In this document: in pieces, positions 14,475 through 64,000 of the stretch
How positions within the stretch are numbered: position 1 is the stretch's first letter
How the letters are laid out: the number at the start of each line of letters is the position of its first letter
Source: Paramoeba atlantica
Lineage: Eukaryota; Protista; Discosea
DNA: 64,000 nt
Assembly: GCA_977017575.1 (NCBI GenBank)
Contig: CDRNVI010000029.1
Location: 744,001-808,000 of the forward strand
Direction: 5' to 3'
Position numbers and translations under genes: made by a program
Notes under the pieces: model-generated
The model's database searches: none
Told to the model about the DNA's origin: nothing
The model's input: only the letters and a program-made list of their open reading frames with translations

Positions 14475-17402
14475 CAACCAACCAACCAACACTGAGATGT
14501 TAGCCCAGTTAAAGGATTCAAAAATTTCCCCTAAATATTTCCACCCTCAAAATATCAACACAGAACACACTTACAGAAAATTTTTCAAAAACAAACAGAC
14601 TTTCAATTTCAAGCCTCCTAATCAATCGATCTCTATGAACCATTAGTACTTAGCTTTTGAACACTATAAGACAACTCACCGTCGCAATCACGTCAGCGAA
14701 CGTAATTCTTTAATTCACCAAATCTGATGGTAATTAACTTAAATATAACAGAAGCATAGGCTCCAATAGCATCTCTCAAAGTTAAGTCAAGGAAAGTTAA
14801 TGTCGTAAGGCTAATTCTCCCGCTTATTTCCATGCTTTTTTACATCAATTATACTCTTGTCTTTTCCTTTAGCTGTAAAACAAGGTTTTTTCTTTGATGT
14901 CCTTTTCACTCTCTTTTGTGACTCCTTTTCTTTTTCTGGTTCACTCTTTGTCTGGGATGATGATAAGTCCAAACTTGTATCTTTTAGACGCTTCATTTGC
15001 GGTTTATTTCGTTTCACCTCAATGCTTACGTTCGAATTGGTTATCTGTGGGGGGCTGGAAATTAAGTTGATACCCTTTGTCTTCTTATGTAAAGAAGCTT
15101 TGCGTATGGGAGATTTCGTCCTCTTTTCATTTATTCGAATGCTCCGTTTGGGTTGTTTCGTTGAACGTGAATCGTTTGAGTTTTCCGACAAAGGGGGCCC
15201 CGTAGATACAGGTACTGCTCTTTGGTTTGTGCCTTTTCTAGTCCTCTGAGTTTTAAGACATCTTGAGGTATTATTTTGCTCTGATTTCCTCTTTGCATTG
15301 CCGTGCAATATATCCCCATAGTATTTTATAGCTAGTTCATTTCCTTCCAGCTTGCACGCCTTTTTGGCTAAATAATCTGCGGTATCGTTGTACATATTTT
15401 CATTGTGTGATTTGACCTTGATACAGTAGAATTTTTTAGTATGTTTTGTACTGTAGTAAGCGTTTTGAAGGGATCGCATTGCTTCGCACCCTTTGAATGA
15501 GTGGAACCCAATGAGCCGATACCGATGCACAGTTTCGTGGAAGAAATCCCATATGTACTCTGAATCCGTGTGAAGTATTACATCTCCCTCGTAGTTGCTA
15601 GCCAGAGAAATTGCCTCGACAACAGCATATGCCTCTATAGATTGTATGGAATCACAGAATTTTTCCGGAGGTCTTGTCCCGTAGAATAATGTACGTTCGT
15701 TGTTTCGTATTATTACTATGCCGCATCCTTGGAGTTGTTTCTTTGTACCCGGAATGAGCGACCCATCCGTATATAAGTGTGTTTCCGAGTCGCTTATGGG
15801 AAAAGGGGTGCTACTTTCTTCCACGTACTGTAGAGTTTGATAGTCCTTGTTTTCCAATATCTTTTTAATACTTTTTTCCCAAGCAGGAGAACAAGACTTT
15901 GTGTAAGAAGGCCGTGGTTCCAGCTCCACCTGTAGTTTTTCCAGTTTCTTCCGCCATGTGGGGCGATCTTGTCCAAGTTGTAGAATTTCAGTAACATCAG
16001 AGTGTAGTTCGTGGGCACACCGTTCGGACAATGTTGGTTTAGAGGCCTCATCATTTGTTCTCCATAGTACTGCTGTAGTAAACGGTGTAGGATGGCGCAC
16101 AAGATGCCCTATTAAGGAAGCTCTCTGTGTCTTAATTACTGTTTCCGGTTTTAAGTCAGTAGGATAAAGCGATTCCGTTCTGAGATGAGAGTCACAAGCA
16201 CTTTTTACGCCAAATACAATTCTGCGCATTCTATTTACTTGAACTTGAATATCGTGAAGTTCTGCCTGATTGACATTCCATGTGCCAGGGTTGTAGTACA
16301 CGACGGATTGAACGAGTGTTTTGAAAATTTGAAATTTGCAATGAGAGGAGATAGAGGACTTCCATATGGCGCGAAGCTTGTGCATTACACCCCATCCTAG
16401 TCGCAGTCTTTCCTTGGGGGACGTACAGGTATCCTCGGTGTTCTGCGTGCTGCCAAGATATCTGTACTTTTGTACTCTAGGAATTTCCCCTAATCCGTCT
16501 ATTTCTAGTGCGGTATTATCATCCTTCACCTTTCCAAGTGTCATCCAAGCCGTTTTCTGTGGACCAACATTGATTTTAAGGTTTGCCTTTTCTGCTGAAG
16601 CACATAAATTGGTAAGCATGATTTTTAATTCAGGTTTCGTTGCAGCAAACAATACAATATCATCCGCGTAATCAATGTCAGAAATTCTCAGTTCTTTGAG
16701 TCCTCGACTTTTTGTCCCGGATGTGTGCGTTACCAGCCCGAGCTTGTTCATGTCAATAGCCTCTACCAAAATTCGGTCCAGAACCATAACAAATAAGTAA
16801 GGAGCTAGAACATCTCCTTGAAGAGTGCCGCTTACAATAGGAAAATCTTCCGTTGTTCCGTAAGGGGTCCGTACATGAGATCGAAGATTTTTGTAAATTG
16901 ACATCACAGCTGCACTCAGTTTTGGAGGTATTTCAAAAGCTCGGAGAGCCTCTTTTATGGAGTCGAACGATATTGATGGAAAGGCTTGCTTGAAGTCTAC
17001 GAAACATGCGTACACGCCTGTTCCTCTGTGCGATTTGCTTGCAATCTCCATAAATGTTGCCTGCGCGCCTGCTGTAGATCGATTCGGGCGGAAACCAAAT
17101 TGGTTCCCACGGAGAGACTTCTCTACTGCTGGTTGGATGCGGTTTAGGATCATTCTGTTCAACACTTTAACCACATGGTTGACAAGGCATATTGGTCTCC
17201 AATTTCCCAGTGATTGCAAGTTTCCCTTTTTTGGCAGCGGTACCTGTAATATGGACTTCCAAGATTGTTCCGCGTTCCCAGATTCATGAACATCGTTCAT
17301 TATATCAAGCAAAACAGTTCTCAACTCGCTGTCATCTGAAATTGCTCTGAGCGCCTCGATAGGTATGCTATCAGCCCCAGGAGCTTTTCCCGATTTGACC
17401 CG
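14475..17402 (-). mobile_element. 5'-truncated RTE/RTEX-like non-LTR retrotransposon (RT + RNase H)
   Basis: 15-bp TSD ATTTGGCACATGAAC at 14460-14474 and 17403-17417. (GTTG)4 tail at 14475-14490. RT motifs KAPGAD, WRPICL, QFGFRPNRST, FVDFKQAF, GTLQGDVLAPYLF, YADD. RNase H motifs YTDGS, EAYAV, TDSEY, KVKSH.EN.YNDTAD. Confidence 0.92.
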
Positions 17403-17450
17403 ATTTGGCACATGAACAGTTTTAATGCATATAAAGTGTTCACAGTGCAA
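14811..17450 (-). CDS. Uninterrupted RT-RNase H ORF (879 aa; first 16 codons come from flanking DNA)
   Basis: No stops or frameshifts. MHCEHFICIKTVHVPN is encoded by 17450-17403, outside the element boundary. No APE domain. Confidence 0.8.
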   Translation of the reverse strand: MHCEHFICIKTVHVPNRVKSGKAPGADSIPIEALRAISDDSELRTVLLDIMNDVHESGNAEQSWKSILQVPLPKKGNLQSLGNWRPICLVNHVVKVLNRMILNRIQPAVEKSLRGNQFGFRPNRSTAGAQATFMEIASKSHRGTGVYACFVDFKQAFPSISFDSIKEALRAFEIPPKLSAAVMSIYKNLRSHVRTPYGTTEDFPIVSGTLQGDVLAPYLFVMVLDRILVEAIDMNKLGLVTHTSGTKSRGLKELRISDIDYADDIVLFAATKPELKIMLTNLCASAEKANLKINVGPQKTAWMTLGKVKDDNTALEIDGLGEIPRVQKYRYLGSTQNTEDTCTSPKERLRLGWGVMHKLRAIWKSSISSHCKFQIFKTLVQSVVYYNPGTWNVNQAELHDIQVQVNRMRRIVFGVKSACDSHLRTESLYPTDLKPETVIKTQRASLIGHLVRHPTPFTTAVLWRTNDEASKPTLSERCAHELHSDVTEILQLGQDRPTWRKKLEKLQVELEPRPSYTKSCSPAWEKSIKKILENKDYQTLQYVEESSTPFPISDSETHLYTDGSLIPGTKKQLQGCGIVIIRNNERTLFYGTRPPEKFCDSIQSIEAYAVVEAISLASNYEGDVILHTDSEYIWDFFHETVHRYRLIGFHSFKGCEAMRSLQNAYYSTKHTKKFYCIKVKSHNENMYNDTADYLAKKACKLEGNELAIKYYGDILHGNAKRKSEQNNTSRCLKTQRTRKGTNQRAVPVSTGPPLSENSNDSRSTKQPKRSIRINEKRTKSPIRKASLHKKTKGINLISSPPQITNSNVSIEVKRNKPQMKRLKDTSLDLSSSQTKSEPEKEKESQKRVKRTSKKKPCFTAKGKDKSIIDVKKHGNKREN

Positions 17451-34039: not shown

Positions 34040-36451
34040 CTATTGTCTACGATATACATAAGCCCGCGAGGAACGAAACTCAATGTCCCCTTTGCGCGTC
34101 ATGGCGTACAAAGCAAGTTGCACCCACTTTCGGTCGTGGCCTTGTGAGCGCAACAGGTTCGTCAGGCGAACAGTTTTCATTCCGAACCCTACACTACAGT
34201 TGTGGCGAATCGCTGCCTCGACACGGTGCACACGGGCTTGCTCCGCGGGTGTGAGCGTCGAGATCGGAGTAGCACCCGCCTTGCTCGCTTCAACTGTACT
34301 GACCTGGAACAGTCGTATCGCCTCCTCGGCATGCGTTGCTGTGGCGACTTTGGAGAGTGTCATCTTTGCTAAGGCCTCCGTCATGCGTACCAGACTTTCA
34401 AGCTGCCGCACGGTGAGATGGATGACACTATCGGAGGGATCGTCCCCGAAGAGGGCCTCGGTGGCCTCCGCTCGGATTTTGGTGAAGTAATTTTGCAGAA
34501 CTTCCTTGGCTTGTGAACTGATCAATGGGGTGCATGAGGCTTTGGCAAAAGCAATGTATTTTTGTAACAATGCGGGCTCGATAATATTAGGATTCGTGTG
34601 CGCCGCTCCAGAGTCAATGACTCCCGGACGTGAACGTTTGTGTCCTTGTTTGTGCAGCGACATTACGTGAGAGGCAATCCGAACATCTCTTTGAAAATCC
34701 TTCACGTCAACCAGACGAAAGATACAATCAAAACGAGAAAGGATACTTGCCTGAAAACTAATTTGTTCGTCATCCGACTTGGTAGGGTCAAAGCTTCCCA
34801 TTAACGGATTCGCCGCAGCTAACACACTACATCGCGCGTTGAGTACCGTAGAGATATTCGCTTTTGAGACCGAGATGGTTTGCTGTTCCATCGCTTCATG
34901 AATCGCAACCTGGTCTTGGATTCGCATCTTGTCAAATTCATCAATACACACCACCCCGCCGTCAGCCAGCACCAGCGAGCCCGCCTCCAGCCACCATTCC
35001 CCACCCTCCCCACGGACCACCGCCGCCGTGAGCCCTGCCGCGCTCCCGCCTTTCCCCGAGGTATACAACCCCACCGGAGCGACCTTCTCCACATACTTCA
35101 ATAGCTGACTCTTCGCCGTGGACGGATCCCCCATCAACAGCACATTCATATCTCCGCGAAGAATCGACCCGTCCTTAATCCGCTTCCTCGTCCCCCCAAA
35201 CAGCAAACACGCAATCGCCTTTTTAATATCCAGTGCCCCAAACACCGCAGGGTCAATACTCGCGGCAATATCCTCATACAGATGCGGTCGTTTCGCCAGA
35301 GCTTCAAAAATCTTCTCCTCCCTCGGTTGCCAAATCGGAAGCCGCAACATTGCATTCATCCCTTTACCCCACGAAGACGACGACGACGACGACGACGACG
35401 AACCCGGACTCCACCACGAAATCGCGCCCCCCCTCCCCTCCCCCTCCCCCCCTCCCTCCTGCGACAACCCCATCCACCCCACCCCTTTTAAATACGCCGT
35501 CCGTAGCCCCACCCCGTTTCGCGATCCATGATTTCCTTTGCCCCCCCCGCCCCCTCCCCCTCCCCCCCCTCTCTCCATCACTGCGTTCACCGCCACCACC
35601 CCCACCCGGTCCCCCGGCGCCACACGGTCGGTGAGGCCCCGGTCCACGAGCACCTCCACGCAGCGGGGCATCTCCCCCGGCGGGACCCCCTGCGGGAGCT
35701 CCTGGAGCCTCACCCGCTGCGCGTCCTCGTAGGCGCAGCTCTGGGCGAGCAGCGTGTAGGGCGCGGGGCGGCAGGGCGGGGTCCCGGGGAGGGGGCTGAC
35801 GTTGGAGACGCAGCGCCGGGGGAGCTCCAGGTCGTTGCTGAGGGGGAGGGCCACGACGGTTTTACAGGACTGGCACTGGAGGAGGGCGCGGACGCAACGG
35901 AGACGGGTCTTGCCGACTTTGATCACCAGGCCGGGGACGCAGAGGAGGTGGGCGACGGGGACGTGGCTGAGGTCGCGGAGGGGGGTGAGTGGGGAGGCCC
36001 AGAGGATTTGGAGTTGGATGTCGTGGGAGGGGGTGGGGGTGGGGGAGACGGGGAAGTAGTGCTCGGCTTCGGCGATCTCGCGGAGGGCTTCTTCGAAGAG
36101 GAAGATACATTGTGTGGCGCGATCCCGTAGGGCGATGCCTAAATCCTGACTGAAGCAGATGGCATCTTCCCAGTTGATTTCTAAGAAGTTTCGACCAGAG
36201 TAGAGATTCGATTGTAGCTGCTTCATGTAGTCAAGCACGATGGCGTTCCGAGAGGATGCCCGATACGAGGAGATAAATTCTTTAAACATTCGCTTCAGAC
36301 CTTCCGGTGAAGCTTGCCATCGAGGCAGGTCATTGGAAACACTCTCACCTTGAGAAGCACGGTCGGTTGTAACGTCCCAGCTGTAAGGTGCTTCACTAGG
36401 ATCACCTTCGGTCGGTGACAGCACAGATACACGTCCTAGATCGTGTTGCAT
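34040..36451 (-). CDS. MCM5: DNA replication licensing factor MCM5
   Basis: IKKAIACLLFGG.RK...DG..LRGDMNVLL.GDPSTAKSQLLK, YTSGKGGSAAGLTA, CIDEFDKMR..DQVAIHEAMEQQTIS, ILSRFD. The GDPSTAKSQ and KA+.CLLFGG combination is MCM5-like. First ATG is at 36451. No introns. Confidence 0.9.
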   Translation of the reverse strand: MQHDLGRVSVLSPTEGDPSEAPYSWDVTTDRASQGESVSNDLPRWQASPEGLKRMFKEFISSYRASSRNAIVLDYMKQLQSNLYSGRNFLEINWEDAICFSQDLGIALRDRATQCIFLFEEALREIAEAEHYFPVSPTPTPSHDIQLQILWASPLTPLRDLSHVPVAHLLCVPGLVIKVGKTRLRCVRALLQCQSCKTVVALPLSNDLELPRRCVSNVSPLPGTPPCRPAPYTLLAQSCAYEDAQRVRLQELPQGVPPGEMPRCVEVLVDRGLTDRVAPGDRVGVVAVNAVMERGGGGGGGGGGKGNHGSRNGVGLRTAYLKGVGWMGLSQEGGGEGEGRGGAISWWSPGSSSSSSSSSSWGKGMNAMLRLPIWQPREEKIFEALAKRPHLYEDIAASIDPAVFGALDIKKAIACLLFGGTRKRIKDGSILRGDMNVLLMGDPSTAKSQLLKYVEKVAPVGLYTSGKGGSAAGLTAAVVRGEGGEWWLEAGSLVLADGGVVCIDEFDKMRIQDQVAIHEAMEQQTISVSKANISTVLNARCSVLAAANPLMGSFDPTKSDDEQISFQASILSRFDCIFRLVDVKDFQRDVRIASHVMSLHKQGHKRSRPGVIDSGAAHTNPNIIEPALLQKYIAFAKASCTPLISSQAKEVLQNYFTKIRAEATEALFGDDPSDSVIHLTVRQLESLVRMTEALAKMTLSKVATATHAEEAIRLFQVSTVEASKAGATPISTLTPAEQARVHRVEAAIRHNCSVGFGMKTVRLTNLLRSQGHDRKWVQLALYAMTRKGDIEFRSSRAYVYRRQ

Positions 36452-37096
36452 GGACCATGAAAATTGTTTTTTTCGAGTCGATAAAAAATCGTATATTTTC
36501 TGGAAAAAACTGTGATCTGCCTTATAAATACACACAAGTGTATCTGTAAGTGTGTGATAAAGTAAGTCGAACTTGGGAAGAAACGCTCCTCAAAGATAAA
36601 GCTTGTACTTAACCTAAACCGAGAGTATCATTGAATCTCTCTCTTGAGAAACTACACTTTCTCAAAGCCTTTTTCTAAATCGTATACGCCATATGATCTA
36701 CAAATAACGACACGGCCACACGATAAAATAATTTTTGTTTTCATTTCATTCAAGCTGCTCGTTTCAAGCTGTTGATATACACCGGCCCAAGCAAAACAAA
36801 AATACTACCTTTTTTCTCCATCACTTAATCAAGGAATAAGATTGGGATATGTTTCCTAAAAATAATTCTTCAAAAAAATACCGAAAACTAAAAACAACAC
36901 ACGACGCAAATGTGATTCGCGTTCGAACACCCCTAAGGGAATCTGTGTATAACTGAAACCTCACTTCAAATACTAAAAAAAACTATTCACCAGCGCGCCA
37001 ACAAAAATAACACATATAATAAAATATTAGTATTCTATCGCACGTGCCAATCAAAGAAACCCACTACTCAACTCATCAGACCTTATTCGCGCAGCT

Positions 37097-40009
37097 CTAC
37101 AAATAGTACGGCATTTGTCGCAGTTCCATTCCCACGTTTGGCTTGGCAGCGGAGGAGGTTCCGTGGAAGAATGCCAACTTGCTTGCGCATTGCAGGACGA
37201 AGGGTGCCTTGATGGATCCGGGCCAGTTCGTGTACATCCAGCACAGGTGGTAGGACATGTTCTCTATAGCTTGCAAGGGCAAACCGCCATCACGGAGCAC
37301 AAAGTACTTGACCGGTTTCGAGGTAGCCAGGGTGCAGTCGACAGCGATTTGGGAAAAGGAGTGGGAGCTGTGCTCGACAACATGTCCACGAGGAATGTTG
37401 TGCCACTCCACCCGTCCGCCCTTTGATACTGGCGCTGCGTAGCGATCATGAATACGTTTCTGGACTACCATGAAGGTAAGTTCAACGTTTTTGCTTCCGA
37501 GTAATTTTTCACAGTCCGCCATCTCTTCAACGCGCACACGGTCCATCATGCTGTCTCCCACACCGTCGCGGTACACTACAACGCGTCCGACATTGGAACC
37601 TTTCACGAGCACCTCGAACACTTCTTCGAGAAATTCCTTCAATGTAGTCATGCTCATGCGATCCATCACTGGGCTACGTCCGTCAGTCTGCTCACTCGCG
37701 GCTCCAGCATTGCGGCGGCTTTCAGTCGATGATCCTCCCATCATCTTCTGTCGGGACACCTGCATGTCTGTGTTGCACAAATGGCTCCACTTTCGAGTCT
37801 CCGCATTGTAGTACCAGGCTACAAAACCAGCGAGGTTGCGACGTTGATTTTCGAAGGATCCGGATTCACTTGCTTCGCTTTTGCGATCGCTATAGATATC
37901 GTAGCCCACGTAGATGGTGCCATTTGCTCCAAGCTCCGGAACGTTGCTCGGAATGTCAACCAGCCACAATGGCGTACCCATCTTAGCAGTCACATTCTTC
38001 GCAATGTTGTGAACATAGGGTCCTGCCGTTTTTGCCTTGCTCATCTTGTCAAAGTCTACGAATTGGGAGACGATGCCCATAGACCCCAGTTCGCTCTTCA
38101 ACGTGCCGTAGGCATCCTGACCACGTGTGCTGTGGCCGTTGCTGAGGACGCATAGCACAAGGGCGGGTGTACCTTCCGCCATGGCCTGGCGTACGGCATC
38201 GGTTCGCACGGAGTCCAAGCATTTGTCGATAAAGTCGCGGTCGTCTTCACCACTATCGACGAAGGTGACAGGTCCTTTCGCCTTCCATACGCCACGAATG
38301 CGTTCGTTGACATCCATAATTTGACGCACTAAGTCACGAGCCTTAGCACCCCAACCAAAGACTTGGTATTCTTTGCGTTCCTCGTTGAACTGAATCCGCA
38401 TGGTCTGGGGAGCGAAATCTTGATTCGGGCGGAGAGTCTCTGGAGAGCCAACGATCTGGACTTTGACGGTCTTCATTTCTTTCGGTTGTATGGTTTCCAA
38501 TGCCGCATTCTTGATCTGAAGGCCGTATCCGCTCAGGAGCTCTTTCGGTTCCTGTTCATCGAATCTCTTCACCAACTTGATACACTGATCTTGCATTTCC
38601 TCGGGCATCTTGGAGCATCGCGTCGGAAGGAAGCGTCGTGCTTCAGTGCTTAATTGGTCCACAAGGACGAATTCAGGAATGAGGCGGACGCGGCCGGAGC
38701 GCTCACCCCAGATAAGAGGCTGATCCGTCTTTGTAACCTCCAACCCATACGTCTCCTTGTAGTAATCCGCATAAGAGATCGTTCGTCCGCTCTTAAGCTC
38801 GAAGACGGACTCCACCGTCGTCCCCTTATCCACTTTGTAGACCATGTAGTTGCGCTTCCTCGTTCCGTAAGACGTCATCACCTTGAGACCCAGCAGACTG
38901 CGCGGCCCGTTCTTGTTGAGGTAGTCCAGCGCAGTTACACGTGCTTCCACATGACTTCGAGGATGAACAATGAGAACAACACCGTTGTCTGTCAACTGGA
39001 ATGTTGCAAAGTAACCAGGTACCACAATCATATCGCGATACACACGTTGCCGAGTGAAATCGCAGTATATTTTTCCTGTTCGGCGAAGATCTAATGATTC
39101 CAGAATTCGGCATAACACATGATTGTACACTTGCATCGTTTGTTCCTCATTAGAGCGGGGGTTGAGTTGCACCTTAGTGATGTCTTCTTTGCGTAGTTCC
39201 ATTGTGGTCTTGAAAGATCCAAGGGAGACTTCACGTGAAAGCGGTTCTTGCAAATGTTCGGAGATATCCTCAAGGCAATAAAAGTTAGTTCCAGAGATGA
39301 TCAAATCGAGCTTCTTGAGGTATTCCTTTTCTAAGACTTGGCGAAGATATCCGAATAGAAGCTTCTTACGTTGAATTTCGCTGATGTTTTCATTTTTCTC
39401 GATGCTGAGGGGATACATGTAGACCTCCGCCTTACTGATGGAGACACTGACAGCATTCCACATTACGTCGCGGCATGGTGCACGCTGACGGAGGGCGTCA
39501 CGTTCGGATGCCATCAAACGACCACGTTCCGTCCTGTCTTTATCAGCCCAGAAACGATCCCAACAGCCACTGCAACAGCGTTTATTGGGGACGTCCGCAT
39601 GCTTTCCTACTCGGCATAACTTACCACAGCTGTCGCATTTGGCGTACTCGCTCCCAATGAAGGGCATCATGCTTCCGGTGCCCGGACCACCTCCCATGGG
39701 ACCGCCCATCGGACGGGGACCACCGGGTGCACCACCCGGAGGGCCACCTGGTCGTCCTCCAGGAGCTGGGCCACGATCGTCTCTTCGGTAGTTGTCGTTT
39801 CGGCGATCATCGCGGCGGTTGTCATCCCGGCGATAGTCTTGGCGGTGGTCACGCGAGCGATCGTCCCTGCGATAGTCGTCGCGACGGTCATCGCGTCGAT
39901 AATCATCACGACGGTCATCGCGCCGATAATCATCACGACGATCATCGCGCCGATAATCATCGCGCCGGTAGTCGTCACGTCGGTAGTCGTCGCGTCGATT
40001 GTAACTCAT
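37097..40009 (-). CDS. PIWI-type Argonaute, copy 1 (970 aa)
   Basis: PAZ (LLGLKVMTSY..ISYADYYKETY..DQPL..LIPE), MID pocket (YGTLK, SQFV, AKMG), PIWI (VGYD, AGFVA, VYRDGVGD, QKRI, LCWMY.NWPG.IK.P..KLA). N-terminal RRDDY repeats and a Cys cluster. Confidence 0.95.
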   Translation of the reverse strand: MSYNRRDDYRRDDYRRDDYRRDDRRDDYRRDDRRDDYRRDDRRDDYRRDDRSRDHRQDYRRDDNRRDDRRNDNYRRDDRGPAPGGRPGGPPGGAPGGPRPMGGPMGGGPGTGSMMPFIGSEYAKCDSCGKLCRVGKHADVPNKRCCSGCWDRFWADKDRTERGRLMASERDALRQRAPCRDVMWNAVSVSISKAEVYMYPLSIEKNENISEIQRKKLLFGYLRQVLEKEYLKKLDLIISGTNFYCLEDISEHLQEPLSREVSLGSFKTTMELRKEDITKVQLNPRSNEEQTMQVYNHVLCRILESLDLRRTGKIYCDFTRQRVYRDMIVVPGYFATFQLTDNGVVLIVHPRSHVEARVTALDYLNKNGPRSLLGLKVMTSYGTRKRNYMVYKVDKGTTVESVFELKSGRTISYADYYKETYGLEVTKTDQPLIWGERSGRVRLIPEFVLVDQLSTEARRFLPTRCSKMPEEMQDQCIKLVKRFDEQEPKELLSGYGLQIKNAALETIQPKEMKTVKVQIVGSPETLRPNQDFAPQTMRIQFNEERKEYQVFGWGAKARDLVRQIMDVNERIRGVWKAKGPVTFVDSGEDDRDFIDKCLDSVRTDAVRQAMAEGTPALVLCVLSNGHSTRGQDAYGTLKSELGSMGIVSQFVDFDKMSKAKTAGPYVHNIAKNVTAKMGTPLWLVDIPSNVPELGANGTIYVGYDIYSDRKSEASESGSFENQRRNLAGFVAWYYNAETRKWSHLCNTDMQVSRQKMMGGSSTESRRNAGAASEQTDGRSPVMDRMSMTTLKEFLEEVFEVLVKGSNVGRVVVYRDGVGDSMMDRVRVEEMADCEKLLGSKNVELTFMVVQKRIHDRYAAPVSKGGRVEWHNIPRGHVVEHSSHSFSQIAVDCTLATSKPVKYFVLRDGGLPLQAIENMSYHLCWMYTNWPGSIKAPFVLQCASKLAFFHGTSSAAKPNVGMELRQMPYYL

Positions 40010-40442
40010 AGAATTTGGTTAAAAGTAGTTAAATTTTCAGGTTCCGTTGTATGTCCTTGTTGTATCTGACATACAACAATTAGGACATAATGTCCGAGAA
40101 ACGACTTATTGATGTTGCATGTGATTAAACAGAGAAACTATGGGAGACTTTTATACATTCAGCGAATTGTGGGTTAAGTTGTTTCATATCAGCGAATCAC
40201 TACAAGAGTAATCATCATGGAATTTTCTGGAGATACGTGGAAACAGTGTTTCATTGTGACAACCGGTCATCTACAGACTTTCCATTTCATTTTTATCCCC
40301 CCAGACCCTTTTTTCATTCATTCTCGAGCCAGCAATCCTTCGGAGGTTTCACCTGCTTCGGATTCCGCTCCTTCGATTTCAAGTCCTTCAATCGAGACTT
40401 CCCCAAGTCAACGAGATCGGATCGCAATCCCTGGACATAGCT

Positions 40443-44822: not shown

Positions 44823-44893
44823 CTGAATCTGGATTGTTTCTTTTGAAAGGTTAATATCAAACAGGTTTGTTCTGTCAAGCGGATCTTTGCTAT

Positions 44894-45925
44894 ATGTTTA
44901 TCTTGCCGAAGCAAACGTGCAGTCGCTTGATTAGAAAAATTGACGGTCAATCTATAAATGTCACGCTGCGCCTCCAAAAAATTGAGACAGTGCGTCGAAC
45001 TATATCAGAGTGGGGCAGCGCCGACGAGGCAAAGAAACTTTTTGCCCGCGTTATGGCCGAGAATCCAGTACATCGTTCCCTCAATTATCTACGCAGGGCT
45101 ATGGAAAAACAAAGCGAGGGGTCTATCCAGGTTTCGCGCCACAGAATGCGTGCGTTACTTTACTATTATGACTATTCTTATGGATCAAAAAAACGAACTT
45201 TGCATCTCACTGCTCGCAAGCGGGAGGCCCGCGTTAATTTTTGTAAGGCGATGCTACAAGAAAATGAACGAACTGAAGGCCAGTTCTTTGAGAAACTCGT
45301 CTTTACTGATGAGACATTCGTCTGTGAAGGGGATTCTTCCACGTCTACCTGGCAAAGTCGATATGATCGAGTTGCGCGTAACAGAGACTTTCACCCCATT
45401 AAGGTCATGATATGGGGAGGTATCGACAATCAAGGCAATTTTATATTTCACTGGTGTGACAATTTCGCGTCCTTTTATGCGAACGAGATAAGCCGCCCTG
45501 TGCAGCCTGGGGAAAAGCGTGAAACGCTTCCTGATCAACTAAAACTCGGGAGCCTATATTATCGTCGCGAAATTCTTGATGCAGAGTGGGTTCGATACTG
45601 TGAGGTAAACCCCACCGCGGTTTACATGGATGATGGAGCCTCGCCGCATACGAGTAAGAAGACACAGCTGTGGTGGAAAAGGCATGTTGCTTCCGGACAT
45701 TACGCACAATGTTTGCGGTACATGTCTGGCGTAGAGGACGTAAATCCTTTCCGGTGGCCCGCAGACTCCCCGGATCTAAATCCCATTGAAAACTTTTGGG
45801 CAAGAATTCGGCATGCAAAGAACCAGACGTTTCCTCGCACGTCTGAGGAGATAAAAAGAGTGTCTCAAAGTTATTTTCTCTCTCTTGAGGGTAGAAGTTG
45901 CATAACACATTTAAAAAACGTTTAG
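44894..45925 (+). CDS. Tc1-like transposase with DD52E spacing
   Basis: LVFTDETF, KVMIWGGI, YMDDGASPH, WPADSPDLNPIENFW. 52 residues lie between the second D and the E. First ATG is at 44894. Confidence 0.85.
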   Translation: MFILPKQTCSRLIRKIDGQSINVTLRLQKIETVRRTISEWGSADEAKKLFARVMAENPVHRSLNYLRRAMEKQSEGSIQVSRHRMRALLYYYDYSYGSKKRTLHLTARKREARVNFCKAMLQENERTEGQFFEKLVFTDETFVCEGDSSTSTWQSRYDRVARNRDFHPIKVMIWGGIDNQGNFIFHWCDNFASFYANEISRPVQPGEKRETLPDQLKLGSLYYRREILDAEWVRYCEVNPTAVYMDDGASPHTSKKTQLWWKRHVASGHYAQCLRYMSGVEDVNPFRWPADSPDLNPIENFWARIRHAKNQTFPRTSEEIKRVSQSYFLSLEGRSCITHLKNV

Positions 45926-48206: not shown

Positions 48207-51119
48207 TTACAAATAGTACGGCATTTGTCGCAGTTCCATTCCCACGTTTGGCTTGGCAGCGGAGGAGGTTCCGTGGAAGAATGCCAACTTGCTTGCGCAT
48301 TGCAGGACGAAGGGTGCCTTGATGGATCCGGGCCAGTTCGTGTACATCCAGCACAGGTGGTAGGACATGTTCTCTATAGCTTGCAAGGGCAAACCACCAT
48401 CACGGAGCACAAAGTACTTGACCGGTTTCGAGGTAGCCAGGGTGCAGTCGACAGCGATTTGGGAAAAGGAGTGGGAGCTGTGCTCGACAACATGTCCACG
48501 AGGAATGTTGTGCCACTCCACCCGTCCGCCCTTTGATACTGGCGCTGCGTAGCGATCATGAATACGTTTCTGGACTACCATGAAGGTAAGTTCAACGTTT
48601 TTGCTTCCGAGTAATTTTTCACAGTCCGCCATCTCTTCAACGCGCACACGGTCCATCATGCTGTCTCCCACACCGTCGCGGTACACTACAACGCGTCCGA
48701 CATTGGAACCTTTCACGAGCACCTCGAACACTTCTTCGAGAAATTCCTTCAATGTGGTCATGCTCATGCGATCCATCACTGGGTTACGTCCGTCAGTCTG
48801 CTCACTCGCGGCTCCAGCATTGCGGCGGCTTTCAGTCGATGATCCTCCCATCATCTTCTGTCGGGACACCTGCATGTCTGTGTTGCACAAATGGCTCCAC
48901 TTTCGAGTCTCCGCATTGTAGTACCAGGCTACAAAACCAGCGAGGTTGCGACGTTGATTTTCGAAGGATCCGGATTCACTTGCTTCGCTTTTGCGATCGC
49001 TATAGATATCGTAGCCCACGTAGATGGTGCCATTTGCTCCAAGCTCCGGAACGTTGCTCGGAATGTCAACCAGCCACAATGGCGTACCCATCTTAGCAGT
49101 CACATTCTTCGCAATGTTGTGAACATAGGGTCCTGCCGTTTTTGCCTTGCTCATCTTGTCAAAGTCTACGAATTGGGAGACGATGCCCATAGACCCCAGT
49201 TCGCTCTTCAACGTGCCGTAGGCATCCTGACCACGTGTGCTGTGGCCGTTGCTGAGGACGCATAGCACAAGGGCGGGTGTACCTTCCGCCATGGCCTGGC
49301 GTACGGTATCGGTTCGCACGGAGTCCAAGCATTTGTCGATAAAGTCGCGGTCGTCTTCACCACTATCGACGAAGGTGACAGGTCCTTTCGCCTTCCATAC
49401 GCCACGAATGCGTTCGTTGACATCCATAATTTGACGCACTAAGTCACGAGCCTTAGCACCCCAACCAAAGACTTGGTATTCTTTGCGTTCCTCGTTGAAC
49501 TGAATCCGCATGGTCTGGGGAGCGAAATCTTGATTCGGGCGGAGAGTCTCTGGAGAGCCAACGATCTGGACTTTGACGGTCTTCATTTCTTTCGGTTGTA
49601 TGGTTTCCAATGCCGCATTCTTGATCTGAAGGCCGTATCCGCTCAGGAGCTCTTTCGGTTCCTGTTCATCGAATCTCTTCACCAACTTGATACACTGATC
49701 TTGCATTTCCTCGGGCATCTTGGAGCATCGCGTCGGAAGGAAGCGTCGTGCTTCAGTGCTTAATTGGTCCACAAGGACGAATTCAGGAATGAGGCGGACG
49801 CGGCCGGAGCGCTCACCCCAGATAAGAGGCTGATCCGTCTTTGTAACCTCCAACACATACGTCTCCTTGTAGTAATCCGCATAAGAGATCGTTCGTCCGC
49901 TCTTAAGCTCGAAGACGGACTCCACCGTCGTCCCCTTATCCACTTTGTAGACCATGTAGTTGCGCTTCCTCGTTCCGTAAGACGTCATCACCTTGAGACC
50001 CAGCAGACTGCGCGGCCCGTTCTTGTTGAGGTAGTCCAGCGCAGTTACACGTGCTTCCACATGACTTCGAGGATGAACAATGAGAACAACACCGTTGTCT
50101 GTCAACTGGAATGTTGCAAAGTAACCAGGTACCACAATCATATCGCGATACACACGTTGCCGAGTGAAATCGCAGTATATTTTTCCTGTTCGGCGAAGAT
50201 CTAATGATTCCAGAATTCGGCATAACACATGATTGTACACTTGCATCGTTTGTTCCTCATTAGAGCGGGGGTTGAGTTGCACCTTAGTGATGTCTTCTTT
50301 GCGTAGTTCCATTGTGGTCTTGAAAGATCCAAGGGAGACTTCACGTGAAAGCGGTTCTTGCAAATGTTCGGAGATATCCTCAAGGCAATAAAAGTTAGTT
50401 CCAGAGATGATCAAATCGAGCTTCTTGAGGTATTCCTTTTCTAAGACTTGGCGAAGATATCCGAATAGAAGCTTCTTACGTTGAATTTCGCTGATGTTTT
50501 CATTTTTCTCGATGCTGAGGGGATACATGTAGACCTCCGCCTTACTGATGGAGACATTGACAGCATTCCACATTACGTCGCGGCATGGTGCACGCTGACG
50601 GAGGGCGTCACGTTCGGATGCCATCAAACGACCACGTTCCGTCCTGTCTTTATCAGCCCAGAAACGATCCCAACAGCCACTGCAACAGCGTTTATTGGGG
50701 ACGTCCGCATGCTTTCCTACTCGGCATAACTTACCACAGCTGTCGCATTTGGCGTACTCGCTCCCAATGAAGGGCATCATGCTTCCGGTGCCCGGACCAC
50801 CTCCCATGGGACCGCCCATCGGACGGGGACCACCGGGTGCACCACCCGGAGGGCCACCTGGTCGTCCTCCAGGAGCTGGGCCACAATCGTCTCTTCGGTA
50901 GTTGTCGTTTCGGCGATCATCGCGGCGGTTGTCATCCCGGCGATAGTCTTGGCGGTGGTCACGCGAGCGATCGTCCCTGCGATAGTCGTCGCGACGGTCA
51001 TCGCGTCGATAATCATCACGACGGTCATCGCGCCGATAATCATCACGACGATCATCGCGCCGATAATCATCGCGCCGGTAGTCGTCACGTCGGTAGTCGT
51101 CGCGTCGATTGTAACTCAT
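48207..51119 (-). CDS. PIWI-type Argonaute, copy 2 (970 aa)
   Basis: Differs from copy 1 at 5 amino acids in the supplied translations. Confidence 0.95.
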   Translation of the reverse strand: MSYNRRDDYRRDDYRRDDYRRDDRRDDYRRDDRRDDYRRDDRRDDYRRDDRSRDHRQDYRRDDNRRDDRRNDNYRRDDCGPAPGGRPGGPPGGAPGGPRPMGGPMGGGPGTGSMMPFIGSEYAKCDSCGKLCRVGKHADVPNKRCCSGCWDRFWADKDRTERGRLMASERDALRQRAPCRDVMWNAVNVSISKAEVYMYPLSIEKNENISEIQRKKLLFGYLRQVLEKEYLKKLDLIISGTNFYCLEDISEHLQEPLSREVSLGSFKTTMELRKEDITKVQLNPRSNEEQTMQVYNHVLCRILESLDLRRTGKIYCDFTRQRVYRDMIVVPGYFATFQLTDNGVVLIVHPRSHVEARVTALDYLNKNGPRSLLGLKVMTSYGTRKRNYMVYKVDKGTTVESVFELKSGRTISYADYYKETYVLEVTKTDQPLIWGERSGRVRLIPEFVLVDQLSTEARRFLPTRCSKMPEEMQDQCIKLVKRFDEQEPKELLSGYGLQIKNAALETIQPKEMKTVKVQIVGSPETLRPNQDFAPQTMRIQFNEERKEYQVFGWGAKARDLVRQIMDVNERIRGVWKAKGPVTFVDSGEDDRDFIDKCLDSVRTDTVRQAMAEGTPALVLCVLSNGHSTRGQDAYGTLKSELGSMGIVSQFVDFDKMSKAKTAGPYVHNIAKNVTAKMGTPLWLVDIPSNVPELGANGTIYVGYDIYSDRKSEASESGSFENQRRNLAGFVAWYYNAETRKWSHLCNTDMQVSRQKMMGGSSTESRRNAGAASEQTDGRNPVMDRMSMTTLKEFLEEVFEVLVKGSNVGRVVVYRDGVGDSMMDRVRVEEMADCEKLLGSKNVELTFMVVQKRIHDRYAAPVSKGGRVEWHNIPRGHVVEHSSHSFSQIAVDCTLATSKPVKYFVLRDGGLPLQAIENMSYHLCWMYTNWPGSIKAPFVLQCASKLAFFHGTSSAAKPNVGMELRQMPYYL

Positions 51120-61291: not shown

Positions 61292-64000
61292 TTACAAATA
61301 GTACGGCATTTGTCGCAGTTCCATTCCCACGTTTGGCTTGGCAGCGGAGGAGGTTCCGTGGAAGAATGCCAACTTGCTTGCGCATTGCAGGACGAAGGGT
61401 GCCTTGATGGATCCGGGCCAGTTCGTGTACATCCAGCACAGGTGGTAGGACATGTTCTCTATAGCTTGCAAGGGCAAACCGCCATCACGGAGCACAAAGT
61501 ACTTGACCGGTTTCGAGGTAGCCAGGGTGCAGTCGACAGCGATTTGGGAAAAGGAGTGGGAGCTGTGCTCGACAACATGTCCACGAGGAATGTTGTGCCA
61601 CTCCACCCGTCCGCCCTTTGATACTGGCGCTGCGTAGCGATCATGAATACGTTTCTGGACTACCATGAAGGTAAGTTCAACGTTTTTGCTTCCGAGTAAT
61701 TTTTCACAGTCCGCCATCTCTTCAACGCGCACACGGTCCATCATGCTGTCTCCCACACCGTCGCGGTACACTACAACGCGTCCGACATTGGAACCTTTCA
61801 CGAGCACCTCGAACACTTCTTCGAGAAATTCCTTCAATGTAGTCATGCTCATGCGATCCATCACTGGGCTACGTCCGTCAGTCTGCTCACTCGCGGCTCC
61901 AGCATTGCGGCGGCTTTCAGTCGATGATCCTCCCATCATCTTCTGTCGGGACACCTGCATGTCTGTGTTGCACAAATGGCTCCACTTTCGAGTCTCCGCA
62001 TTGTAGTACCAGGCTACAAAACCAGCGAGGTTGCGACGTTGATTTTCGAAGGATCCGGATTCACTTGCTTCGCTTTTGCGATCGCTATAGATATCGTAGC
62101 CCACGTAGATGGTGCCATTTGCTCCAAGCTCCGGAACGTTGCTCGGAATGTCAACCAGCCACAATGGCGTACCCATCTTAGCAGTCACATTCTTCGCAAT
62201 GTTGTGAACATAGGGTCCTGCCGTTTTTGCCTTGCTCATCTTGTCAAAGTCTACGAATTGGGAGACGATGCCCATAGACCCCAGTTCGCTCTTCAACGTG
62301 CCGTAGGCATCCTGACCACGTGTGCTGTGGCCGTTGCTGAGGACGCATAGCACAAGGGCGGGTGTACCTTCCGCAATGGCCTGGCGTACGGCATCGGTTC
62401 GCACGGAGTCCAAGCATTTGTCGATAAAGTCGCGGTCGTCTTCACCACTATCGACGAAGGTGACAGGTCCTTTCGCCTTCCATACGCCACGAATGCGTTC
62501 GTTGACATCCATAATTTGACGCACTAAGTCACGAGCCTTAGCACCCCAACCAAAGACTTGGTATTCTTTGCGTTCCTCGTTGAACTGAATCCGCATGGTC
62601 TGGGGAGCGAAATCTTGATTCGGGCGGAGAGTCTCTGGAGAGCCAACGATCTGGACTTTGACGGTCTTCATTTCTTTCGGTTGTATGGTTTCCAATGCCG
62701 CATTCTTGATCTGAAGGCAGTATCCGCTCAGGAGCTCTTTCGGTTCCTGTTCATCGAATCTCTTCACCAACTTGATACACTGATCTTGCATTTCCTCGGG
62801 CATCTTGGAGCATCGCGTCGGAAGGAAGCGTCGTGCTTCAGTGCTTAATTGGTCCACAAGGACGAATTCAGGAATGAGGCGGACGCGGCCGGAGCGCTCA
62901 CCCCAGATAAGAGGCTGATCCGTCTTTGTAACCTCCAACCCATACGTCTCCTTGTAGTAATCCGCATAAGAGATCGTTCGTCCGCTCTTAAGCTCGAAGA
63001 CGGACTCCACCGTCGTCCCCTTATCCACTTTGTAGACCATGTAGTTGCGCTTCCTCGTTCCGTAAGACGTCATCACCTTGAGACCCAGCAGACTGCGCGG
63101 CCCGTTCTTGTTGAGGTAGTCCAGCGCAGTTACACGTGCTTCCACATGACTTCGAGGATGAACAATGAGAACAACACCGTTGTCTGTCAACTGGAATGTT
63201 GCAAAGTAACCAGGTACCACAATCATATCGCGATACACACGTTGCCGAGTGAAATCGCAGTATATTTTTCCTGTTCGGCGAAGATCTAATGATTCCAGAA
63301 TTCGGCATAACACATGATTGTACACTTGCATCGTTTGTTCCTCATTAGAGCGGGGGTTGAGTTGCACCTTAGTGATGTCTTCTTTGCGTAGTTCCATTGT
63401 GGTCTTGAAAGATCCAAGGGAGACTTCACGTGAAAGCGGTTCTTGCAAATGTTCGGAGATATCCTCAAGGCAATAAAAGTTAGTTCCAGAGATGATCAAA
63501 TCGAGCTTCTTGAGGTATTCCTTTTCTAAGACTTGGCGAAGATATCCGAATAGAAGCTTCTTACGTTGAATTTCGCTGATGTTTTCATTTTTCTCGATGC
63601 TGAGGGGATACATGTAGACCTCCGCCTTACTGATGGAGACATTGACAGCATTCCACATTACGTCGCGGCATGGTGCACGCTGACGGAGGGCGTCACGTTC
63701 GGATGCCATCAAACGACCACGTTCCGTCCTGTCTTTATCAGCCCAGAAACGATCCCAACAGCCACTGCAACAGCGTTTATTGGGGACGTCCGCATGCTTT
63801 CCTACTCGGCATAACTTACCACAGCTGTCGCATTTGGCGTACTCGCTCCCAATGAAGGGCATCATGCTTCCGGTGCCCGGACCACCTCCCATGGGACCGC
63901 CCATCGGACGGGGACCACCGGGTGCACCACCCGGAGGGCCACCTGGTCGTCCTCCAGGAGCTGGGCCACGATCGTCTCTTCGGTAGTTGTCGTTTCGGCG
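61292..64000 (-). CDS. PIWI-type Argonaute, copy 3 (5' end beyond the window)
   Basis: Nearly identical to copies 1 and 2. The RRDD repeat is cut by the window edge. Confidence 0.95.
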   Translation of the reverse strand, partial: RRNDNYRRDDRGPAPGGRPGGPPGGAPGGPRPMGGPMGGGPGTGSMMPFIGSEYAKCDSCGKLCRVGKHADVPNKRCCSGCWDRFWADKDRTERGRLMASERDALRQRAPCRDVMWNAVNVSISKAEVYMYPLSIEKNENISEIQRKKLLFGYLRQVLEKEYLKKLDLIISGTNFYCLEDISEHLQEPLSREVSLGSFKTTMELRKEDITKVQLNPRSNEEQTMQVYNHVLCRILESLDLRRTGKIYCDFTRQRVYRDMIVVPGYFATFQLTDNGVVLIVHPRSHVEARVTALDYLNKNGPRSLLGLKVMTSYGTRKRNYMVYKVDKGTTVESVFELKSGRTISYADYYKETYGLEVTKTDQPLIWGERSGRVRLIPEFVLVDQLSTEARRFLPTRCSKMPEEMQDQCIKLVKRFDEQEPKELLSGYCLQIKNAALETIQPKEMKTVKVQIVGSPETLRPNQDFAPQTMRIQFNEERKEYQVFGWGAKARDLVRQIMDVNERIRGVWKAKGPVTFVDSGEDDRDFIDKCLDSVRTDAVRQAIAEGTPALVLCVLSNGHSTRGQDAYGTLKSELGSMGIVSQFVDFDKMSKAKTAGPYVHNIAKNVTAKMGTPLWLVDIPSNVPELGANGTIYVGYDIYSDRKSEASESGSFENQRRNLAGFVAWYYNAETRKWSHLCNTDMQVSRQKMMGGSSTESRRNAGAASEQTDGRSPVMDRMSMTTLKEFLEEVFEVLVKGSNVGRVVVYRDGVGDSMMDRVRVEEMADCEKLLGSKNVELTFMVVQKRIHDRYAAPVSKGGRVEWHNIPRGHVVEHSSHSFSQIAVDCTLATSKPVKYFVLRDGGLPLQAIENMSYHLCWMYTNWPGSIKAPFVLQCASKLAFFHGTSSAAKPNVGMELRQMPYYL

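Follow-up and report, generated by a model that had tools for sequence, protein, structure and literature searches.

We analyzed a 64,000-nucleotide stretch of DNA (the window) from contig CDRNVI010000029.1 of the Paramoeba atlantica assembly GCA_977017575.1 (positions 744,001 to 808,000 of the forward strand). In our list of open reading frames (ORFs), 37097–40009 on the minus strand is one unbroken ORF of 970 codons. The ORF list, Pfam, AlphaFold2 (AF2), and Foldseek together identify it as a complete, intronless coding sequence for a PIWI-type Argonaute of 970 amino acids, ending in TAG; we will call it copy 1. A second copy of the gene, at 48207–51119 (minus strand), ends in TAA and is identical at 965 of the 970 residues. 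Self-BLAST finds a third at 61292–64000 (minus strand), whose N-terminus lies beyond the end of the window. Here we consider the N-terminus of these proteins: residues 1–150 of copy 1 correspond to 39560–40009 (minus strand), and the first ~150 residues of copy 2 are the same except for R79C. We think it fairly probable that this region is a translated N-terminal extension of a multi-copy, probably non-slicing Argonaute of the PIWI clade, and that its two parts, a tail of Arg/Asp repeats and a putative zinc module, evolve in different ways.

The rest of the protein bears out an earlier reading, made from the sequence alone (the sequence-only reading), that the region is the N-terminus of a PIWI-type Argonaute. 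Pfam identifies a PAZ domain at residues 369–449 (38663–38905, minus strand; PF02170, E = 7.6e-17) and a Piwi domain at residues 618–950 (37160–38158, minus strand; PF02171, E = 4e-33). Pfam and the AF2 model of residues 105–970 agree on the N-PAZ-MID-PIWI architecture of a PIWI-clade Argonaute; the model has a mean predicted local distance difference test (pLDDT) score of 78.8 and a predicted template-modeling score of 0.75. When this model was compared to known structures with Foldseek, ranks 1–18 were all PIWI-clade proteins (Hili, Mili, Siwi, EfPiwi, Miwi, and Drosophila Piwi, at 18–22% identity), and AGO-clade structures followed at 15–17% identity. The nearest relatives by sequence that have names are metazoan Ago3, Piwil (Piwil3), and Siwi, at ~27% identity. 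On both the sequence matches and the fold ranking, the core belongs to the PIWI clade. (Our first homology search with the whole protein was swamped by words from the repeats and gave three proteins; a search with residues 105–600 added nothing.)

The slicer positions, from an alignment with ten metazoan and metagenomic PIWIs, are D704-K755-D815-S943 instead of DEDH. Because Lys and Ser replace the catalytic Glu and His, the protein probably cannot slice. Two related proteins from the Joint Genome Institute (JGI) differ at these positions: P0002 (63% identity; JGI sample 3300017225) has D-R-D-G, and the more distant P0004 (50% identity in the Piwi half) has an intact D-E-D-H and is probably a slicer. 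Just past the position of the catalytic Glu, there is a Piwi insert of about 35 residues (residues ~753–786; 37652–37753), which is absent from metazoan PIWIs, varies among three relatives, and has low pLDDT, as for a disordered segment.

The Arg/Asp repeat tail

By composition and by Tandem Repeats Finder, residues 5–78 (39776–39997, minus strand) are a mixed-charge array of RRDD(Y) units. The ~80 residues of such repeats in the sequence-only reading are indeed present: we count 13 perfect RRDD units, six of which are RRDDY, and three degenerate ones (SRDH, RQDY, and RRND), or 16 units altogether. Counting over residues 1–80 gives 32 Arg, 29 Asp, and 9 Tyr. At the DNA level, the array has a period of 27 nucleotides (nt), with 3.7 copies, 89% matches, and a score of 151. 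The array is followed by a Gly/Pro-rich linker at residues 79–116 (39662–39775, minus strand), which was delimited by its composition and by alignment with L001 and L003 (the contigs that encode P0002 and P0004); 16 of its 38 residues are Gly and 11 are Pro.

The composition of the tail differs among relatives. P0002 has Asp/Arg (DR) repeats and, at the position of the linker, an Arg-Gly-Gly (RGG) box (in frame 3 of L001). The tail is rich in Pro, Ala, and Gln in P0004 and rich in Pro and Thr in P0017, a relative that is described below. Near their extreme N-termini, P0004 (L003 23–130) and P0017 (residues 1–25) share the motif A-W-N-K-x-P-P; their Pro-rich tails cannot otherwise be aligned.

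We propose that this fast-evolving and disordered tail, with its 16 RRDD(Y) units and Gly/Pro linker, would most likely bring the PIWI protein into the nucleus or into a nuclear RNA-rich body, by analogy to Entamoeba EhAgo2-2 and to Arg/Asp mixed-charge domains. The C-terminal region of EhAgo2-2 contains an RGG/RG motif and 12 RRDDR repeats; it is necessary for nuclear localization, and it is also sufficient, as it carries EhAgo2-3 into the nucleus, but small RNAs are bound without it (PMC6796981). The authors also mentioned one Piwi from Caenorhabditis brenneri with such a stretch (PMC6796981). A DR tail is therefore not a new Argonaute architecture, because the DR repeat of EhAgo2-2 was already characterized as a nuclear signal. 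The array in our protein, with its 13 perfect units, is a terminal array of the EhAgo2-2 type, for which about 12 RRDD-type repeats are the pattern.

We also considered that the tail might act mainly as the RGG domain of trypanosome AGO1 or the Arg-Gly and Arg-Ala (RG/RA) motifs of animal PIWIs do, in association with polysomes or RNA, or in arginine methylation and docking of Tudor proteins, rather than in nuclear import. Trypanosome AGO1 does have an N-terminal RGG domain. In P0002, the closest relative, an obvious RGG box separates the DR repeats from the cysteine module, and EhAgo2-2 and a PIWI from Entamoeba marina pair RGG with DR repeats as well. However, reading residues 79–116 of the window copy gives no (G/A)R(G/A) motif, and deleting just the DR part of EhAgo2-2 abolished its nuclear localization while small-RNA binding was unaffected (PMC6796981). 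This alternative seems unlikely to us, and we prefer nuclear targeting as the main role of the tail.

The cysteine module

Downstream of the linker, residues 117–162 (39524–39661, minus strand) form a conserved cysteine module, which we defined from the columns that are invariant in four sequences, from AF2, and from HMMER. The module has a PF.GS lead-in, then C125-x2-C128-x17-C146-x2-C149-W150, and then W154, D158, and R162. The core with the four cysteines (CDSC...CCSGCW) is at residues 125–150 (39560–39637). The four aligned sequences are the window protein, P0002 and P0004 (both extended at their N-termini, as explained below), and P0017, a fragment of 177 residues that comes from Apiculatamorpha spiralis (subclass Prokinetoplastina; EukProt transcriptome). 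The four proteins are 29–49% identical in this region; C125, C128, C146, C149, W150, W154, D158, and R162 are invariant, and the family motif is C-x2-C-x17/18-C-x2-C-W-x2-[FW]-W. Conservation continues past the module with E169, L173, R176, and W184-N185-A186. AF2 and the alignment place a helical connector at residues 163–183 (39458–39523, minus strand), which leads to the WNA at the start of the N domain.

The sequence-only reading had described a PGG linker followed by a cysteine string. Both exist, at residues 79–116 and 125–150, but the CC doublet and the His within the string are not conserved. The string has six Cys and one His, and only four of the Cys are kept in the relatives: the fifth (C132) is one position off in P0002 and missing from P0017, His137 is Asn in P0004, and all three relatives have Tyr where the doublet begins.

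To find other carriers of the module, we compared residues 112–230 to 1.84 billion representative proteins with HMMER. The matches were P0004 (E = 1.5e-16), P0002 (E = 2.4e-13), and P0017 (E = 4.4e-5), and we found no other carriers among these proteins. (One further match, P0016, is a bacterial repeat protein and was spurious on reading its sequence.) As far as can be seen from sequence comparison, the module is restricted to a small group of kinetoplastid PIWIs. The suggestion that known Argonautes lack it has thus held up, as we found it in none outside this small clade. Because it is present in a prokinetoplastid, the module may be old within the kinetoplastid class.

We modeled the module with AF2 in two ways. 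For residues 114–205, with the four-sequence alignment as input, pLDDT was 69–87 across residues ~118–175, and the model places the first CxxC in the turn of a beta-hairpin and starts a helix at the second CxxC, with another helix after it. The model of residues 105–970 has the same hairpin and one long helix (residues 147–175); pLDDT was 40–66 in the module and ~80 where the helix meets the N domain. A knuckle in a hairpin and another at the start of a helix is the layout of a treble-clef zinc finger. Both models show a treble-clef-like secondary structure, although at moderate pLDDT and with no structural neighbor above Z = 3. The four Cys most likely hold one zinc ion.

The cysteines might instead bind no metal, and be a structural or redox motif of this lineage, or be conserved by chance within a very small clade. 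Just four sequences are known, and the confidence of the models is moderate, which leaves some room for this view. But the four Cys are invariant from a prokinetoplastid to bodonid-type proteins while neighboring residues vary freely, two CxxC knuckles, one in a hairpin and one where a helix begins, make up the standard geometry for zinc, and disulfides are seldom kept in cytosolic or nuclear proteins. We consider it quite unlikely that the module lacks a metal.

The module might also be a diverged form of a known finger (FCS/MYM/TRASH, GATA-type, B-box, or a retroviral-type knuckle) and have that family's function. The sequence-only reading favored an FCS/MYM-like finger. The second half of the FCS/MYM motif is F-C-S-x2-C, or C-x3-C, and the residue before C146 is aromatic in three of the four sequences, as in F-C-S (it is Tyr in these three and Cys in the window copy). 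However, the invariant second pair is C146-x2-C149 instead of the C-x3-C of FCS/MYM/TRASH, and Pfam reported no family, even at E ≤ 10, for three cuts of the N-terminal region (including residues 105–200 and 116–160) and no such finger for the whole protein, so this assignment is not supported. C-x2-C-x17/18-C-x2-C is the spacing of GATA fingers. A GATA-type finger is not supported either: the spacing is equal, but Pfam was empty and there was no GATA finger among the fold matches.

Searches of the Protein Data Bank (PDB) by sequence, with the single sequence and with the four-sequence profile, gave nothing below E = 0.03; the matches were at the level of chance and included the knuckles of HIV nucleocapsid (E = 0.05–0.14), an RQT4/TRIP4-type finger (E = 0.3–0.5), and multihaem CxxCH sites. 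Foldseek had been suggested as a check on the family, but comparing the module to the PDB with it gave nothing below E = 5. Searching the ESM Atlas by features and by shape gave no usable match. VIA-align against 48,161 chains reached Z = 3.0 at most, and fingers of the B-box, RING, and CsfB types were mixed in with unrelated helical proteins (B-box matches had Z of 2.4–2.9). The GATA spacing, the aromatic residue, and these weak HIV, RQT4/TRIP4-type, and B-box matches are what favor a known finger; with all of the family, sequence, and fold searches coming up empty or mixed, we think that it is very unlikely.

Probable translation of the tail and genomic setting

Several observations suggest that the tail is part of the protein. 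When we compared the 16 repeat units pairwise, 312 of the 429 nucleotide differences were at codon position 3. In the RRDD frame, 266 of the differing codon pairs were synonymous and 74 were non-synonymous, while the other two frames had 54 synonymous versus 320 non-synonymous pairs and 26 versus 347. Because synonymous differences dominate solely in the RRDD frame, it is the peptide repeat that is preserved and not the DNA repeat alone. Also, the usage of Arg and Asp codons in the repeat matches the remainder of the gene.

The relatives of the window protein point the same way. The P0002 gene was called from an internal Met, but its transcript-like contig stays open, in the frame of the PIWI gene, all the way to the 5' end, and this 5' part encodes DR-rich repeats, the RGG box, and the cysteine module in frame with the PIWI ORF. 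(The gene caller split P0002: in L001 1–525, a wrong-frame product of 174 amino acids was called over the DR repeat. With this call and the internal start, the tail and the cysteine module are hidden from the database protein.) The contig of P0004 opens, at L003 1–25, with the last (3') letters of a kinetoplastid spliced leader; 4 nt further on, an ATG begins a Pro/Ala/Gln-rich tail of 120 residues, with the module next. This contig thus represents a trans-spliced mRNA with almost no 5' untranslated region.

In the window gene, the upstream AGs nearest to the start codon, which are candidate splice acceptors, are at −48, −58, and −97, and there is no ATG between −58 and the start codon. There is also an AG within ATGAGT, right behind a pyrimidine-rich stretch; it is formally a candidate acceptor and its use would remove the start codon. 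Five runs that hold this stretch also cover intergenic DNA and are kept as contigs, so that their depth and contig ends are uninformative about transcription or the 5' end. On the sequence evidence, the RRDD tail is probably translated. It is highly unlikely that the array is instead an untranslated leader or a DNA satellite, with trans-splicing at or after the ATG and translation from Met101, 105, 114, or 115: the runs for this genome do look like DNA, the AG in ATGAGT is there, and the repeat is open in another frame too (an open frame by itself proves little), but the synonymous excess is confined to the RRDD frame, the DR frame of the 63%-identical relative runs on into the PIWI ORF despite a differing DNA repeat, and the trans-spliced P0004 begins its long low-complexity tail at the first AUG.

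Self-BLAST indicates that the duplicated unit shared by the copies begins 406 nt ahead of the ATG and ends with the stop codon. The upstream region that was duplicated along with the coding sequence (40010–40415, minus strand) contains the candidate acceptor AGs and small hairpins. The hairpins are short and nested, with arms of 9–14 nt, and are at 40046–40089, or 37–80 nt upstream of the start codon. Contigs from three runs have a variant with 32 extra letters at 40042–40044, so other copies differ there. Another identical copy lies in a different context, on ENA contig L002 (position 12913). Copies 2 and 3 and the copy on L002 have a TAA stop codon and share a 3' flank of at least 90 nt, while copy 1 has its TAG stop codon (37097–37099) and its own unique 3' flank; the final base of this stop codon is precisely where its similarity to the other copies ends. 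In the runs, word depth on contigs with the gene is several times that on the flanks. Word depth is not copy number, but this agrees with a multi-copy gene. As the copies have unrelated flanks, we considered that the gene unit might be the cargo of a transposon, but we did not find evidence for this.

An MCM5-type helicase gene is directly downstream of copy 1 (34040–36535, minus strand). The window also contains a reverse transcriptase/RNase H ORF (14811–17450, minus strand) and, between copies 1 and 2, a DDE_3 transposase ORF (44867–45925, plus strand). The genome in the window appears to be of kinetoplastid type, judging by the relatives (the spliced leader on L003 and P0017 from Apiculatamorpha) and by the same-strand order of intronless genes. 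We searched the window for the 3' end of the spliced leader and did not find it, and an Rfam search of the window found nothing.

Proposed function and comparison with known systems

We propose that the extension has two layers. The first would be the tail, acting in nuclear targeting. The second would be the conserved module of 45 residues, with its four invariant Cys most likely on one zinc, and with the first CxxC in the knuckle of the predicted beta-hairpin and the second starting a long helix that would run into the Argonaute N domain. As counted from the alignment, the module of the window protein has a net charge of about +3, as compared with +2 for P0004 and P0017 and −1 for P0002. Because the surface charge varies while conservation is seen in two Trp and in an acidic/Arg patch of the helix, we lean slightly towards the module docking a protein partner or stabilizing the N lobe, over sequence-independent RNA binding. 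With Lys and Ser at the positions of the catalytic Glu and His, silencing would be by recruitment of partners and not by cutting, which would fit a nuclear role in a transposon-rich genome.

Several observations weigh against this proposal. The DR tail is missing from P0004 and P0017, so its role is not essential to the family. The precedent for nuclear localization comes from an amoebozoan protein whose repeat is at the C-terminus. Confidence in the model of the module is moderate when it is modeled alone and lower in the context of residues 105–970, and with no structural neighbor above Z = 3, zinc binding and the fold class are predictions. As for translation, the formal acceptor within ATGAGT and the DNA-like coverage of the runs both count on the other side.

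PIWI-clade Argonautes beyond animals and ciliates have been little studied, and the functional work that we found in kinetoplastids concerns trypanosomatid AGO1 and a PIWI-like protein without a PAZ domain. The present gene shows that a PAZ-bearing PIWI-clade protein is kept in free-living kinetoplastids, in several copies and in a transposon-rich genome. The protein also has a conserved zinc-finger-like domain, which we found in no other Argonaute; a DR tail on an Argonaute was already known. The family also forms a natural series for separating the contributions of the module and the tail: one member has DEDH and a Pro/Ala/Gln tail, and others have D-K-D-S or D-R-D-G and DR tails. The present value of the module is as a well-defined and testable domain, with its functions predicted or inferred.

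The sequence-only reading had proposed that the tail targets the protein to condensates. In human cells, Arg/Asp repeats do enter nuclear speckles, depending on their length and on arginine, and blockier charge patterns moved reporters towards the nucleolus (bioRxiv 10.1101/771592; PMC9324279). That part of the idea stands, but the closer precedent of EhAgo2-2 puts nuclear import first. Like the mixed-charge domains of speckle proteins, the tail is ~78% Arg and Asp, is near-neutral or slightly positive, and has short-range alternation of charge; it is these features that are reported to bring about entry into speckles. In place of strict RD dipeptides, it has RRDD blocks with interspersed Tyr, and the speckle work was done in human cells.

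Trypanosomatid AGO1 and the PAZ-less PIWI-like protein belong to the Argonaute family and are from the same class of organisms as the window protein. Neither the homology searches nor HMMER retrieved any trypanosomatid relatives. The PIWI-like protein of Leishmania and Trypanosoma is a 133 kDa mitochondrial protein without a PAZ domain (PMC3528672), whereas the window protein has one.

Animal PIWIs (Siwi, Mili/Hili, Miwi, Drosophila Piwi, and Ephydatia PiwiA) share the N-PAZ-MID-PIWI fold of the window protein. Their structural matches have E of 1e-46 to 1e-53 and template-modeling scores of 0.56–0.65 by query and 0.65–0.74 by target, at 20–27% sequence identity. A disordered N-terminal extension governs localization or partner binding in animal PIWIs too. 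However, their tails have RG/RA methylation motifs or classical nuclear localization signals, they lack the N-terminal four-cysteine module (with gaps there in the alignment), and most of them keep DEDH, whereas the window protein has D-K-D-S.

GTSF1, which has two CHHC fingers, is a protein in its own right. To our knowledge, no nuclear piRNA-like pathway is known in this protist lineage. We speculate, with little expectation of being right, that the module is an ancient kinetoplastid-specific Argonaute domain, spanning prokinetoplastids and bodonid-type lineages, and a built-in counterpart of zinc-finger PIWI cofactors such as GTSF1, which would sense target engagement or dock an effector, and so would let a slicer-dead PIWI that is imported by its DR tail direct the silencing of transposons in the nucleus. 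The analogy is a speculative one: GTSF1 is a small zinc-finger cofactor of PIWI proteins with conserved aromatic residues (PMC11602119; PDB 9nhb and 9nhc, which were among the Foldseek matches of the core), and we found no similarity between the module and GTSF1 by sequence or by fold.

The closest known parallel for the tail remains Entamoeba. Besides EhAgo2-2, a PIWI from E. marina (P0003) has a C-terminal RGG stretch followed by RRDDY-type repeats, and its repeats match those of the window protein with E = 6.8e-6. As in the window protein, these are terminal arrays with roughly a dozen or more RRDD(R/Y) units, and the Entamoeba arrays adjoin RGG/RG. The arrangement differs: in Entamoeba, the array is C-terminal (core-RGG-DR), while in the window family it is N-terminal (DR, then Gly/Pro or RGG, then the module and the core). 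The Entamoeba proteins do not have the cysteine module, and the cores are not close kin (3% of the query was covered). Because the cores are unrelated beyond being Argonautes, we think that the likeness of the tails is most likely convergent. That unrelated Argonautes from Amoebozoa and Kinetoplastea both pair DR repeats with an RGG box suggests a general, convergent route for targeting small-RNA effectors to the nucleus.

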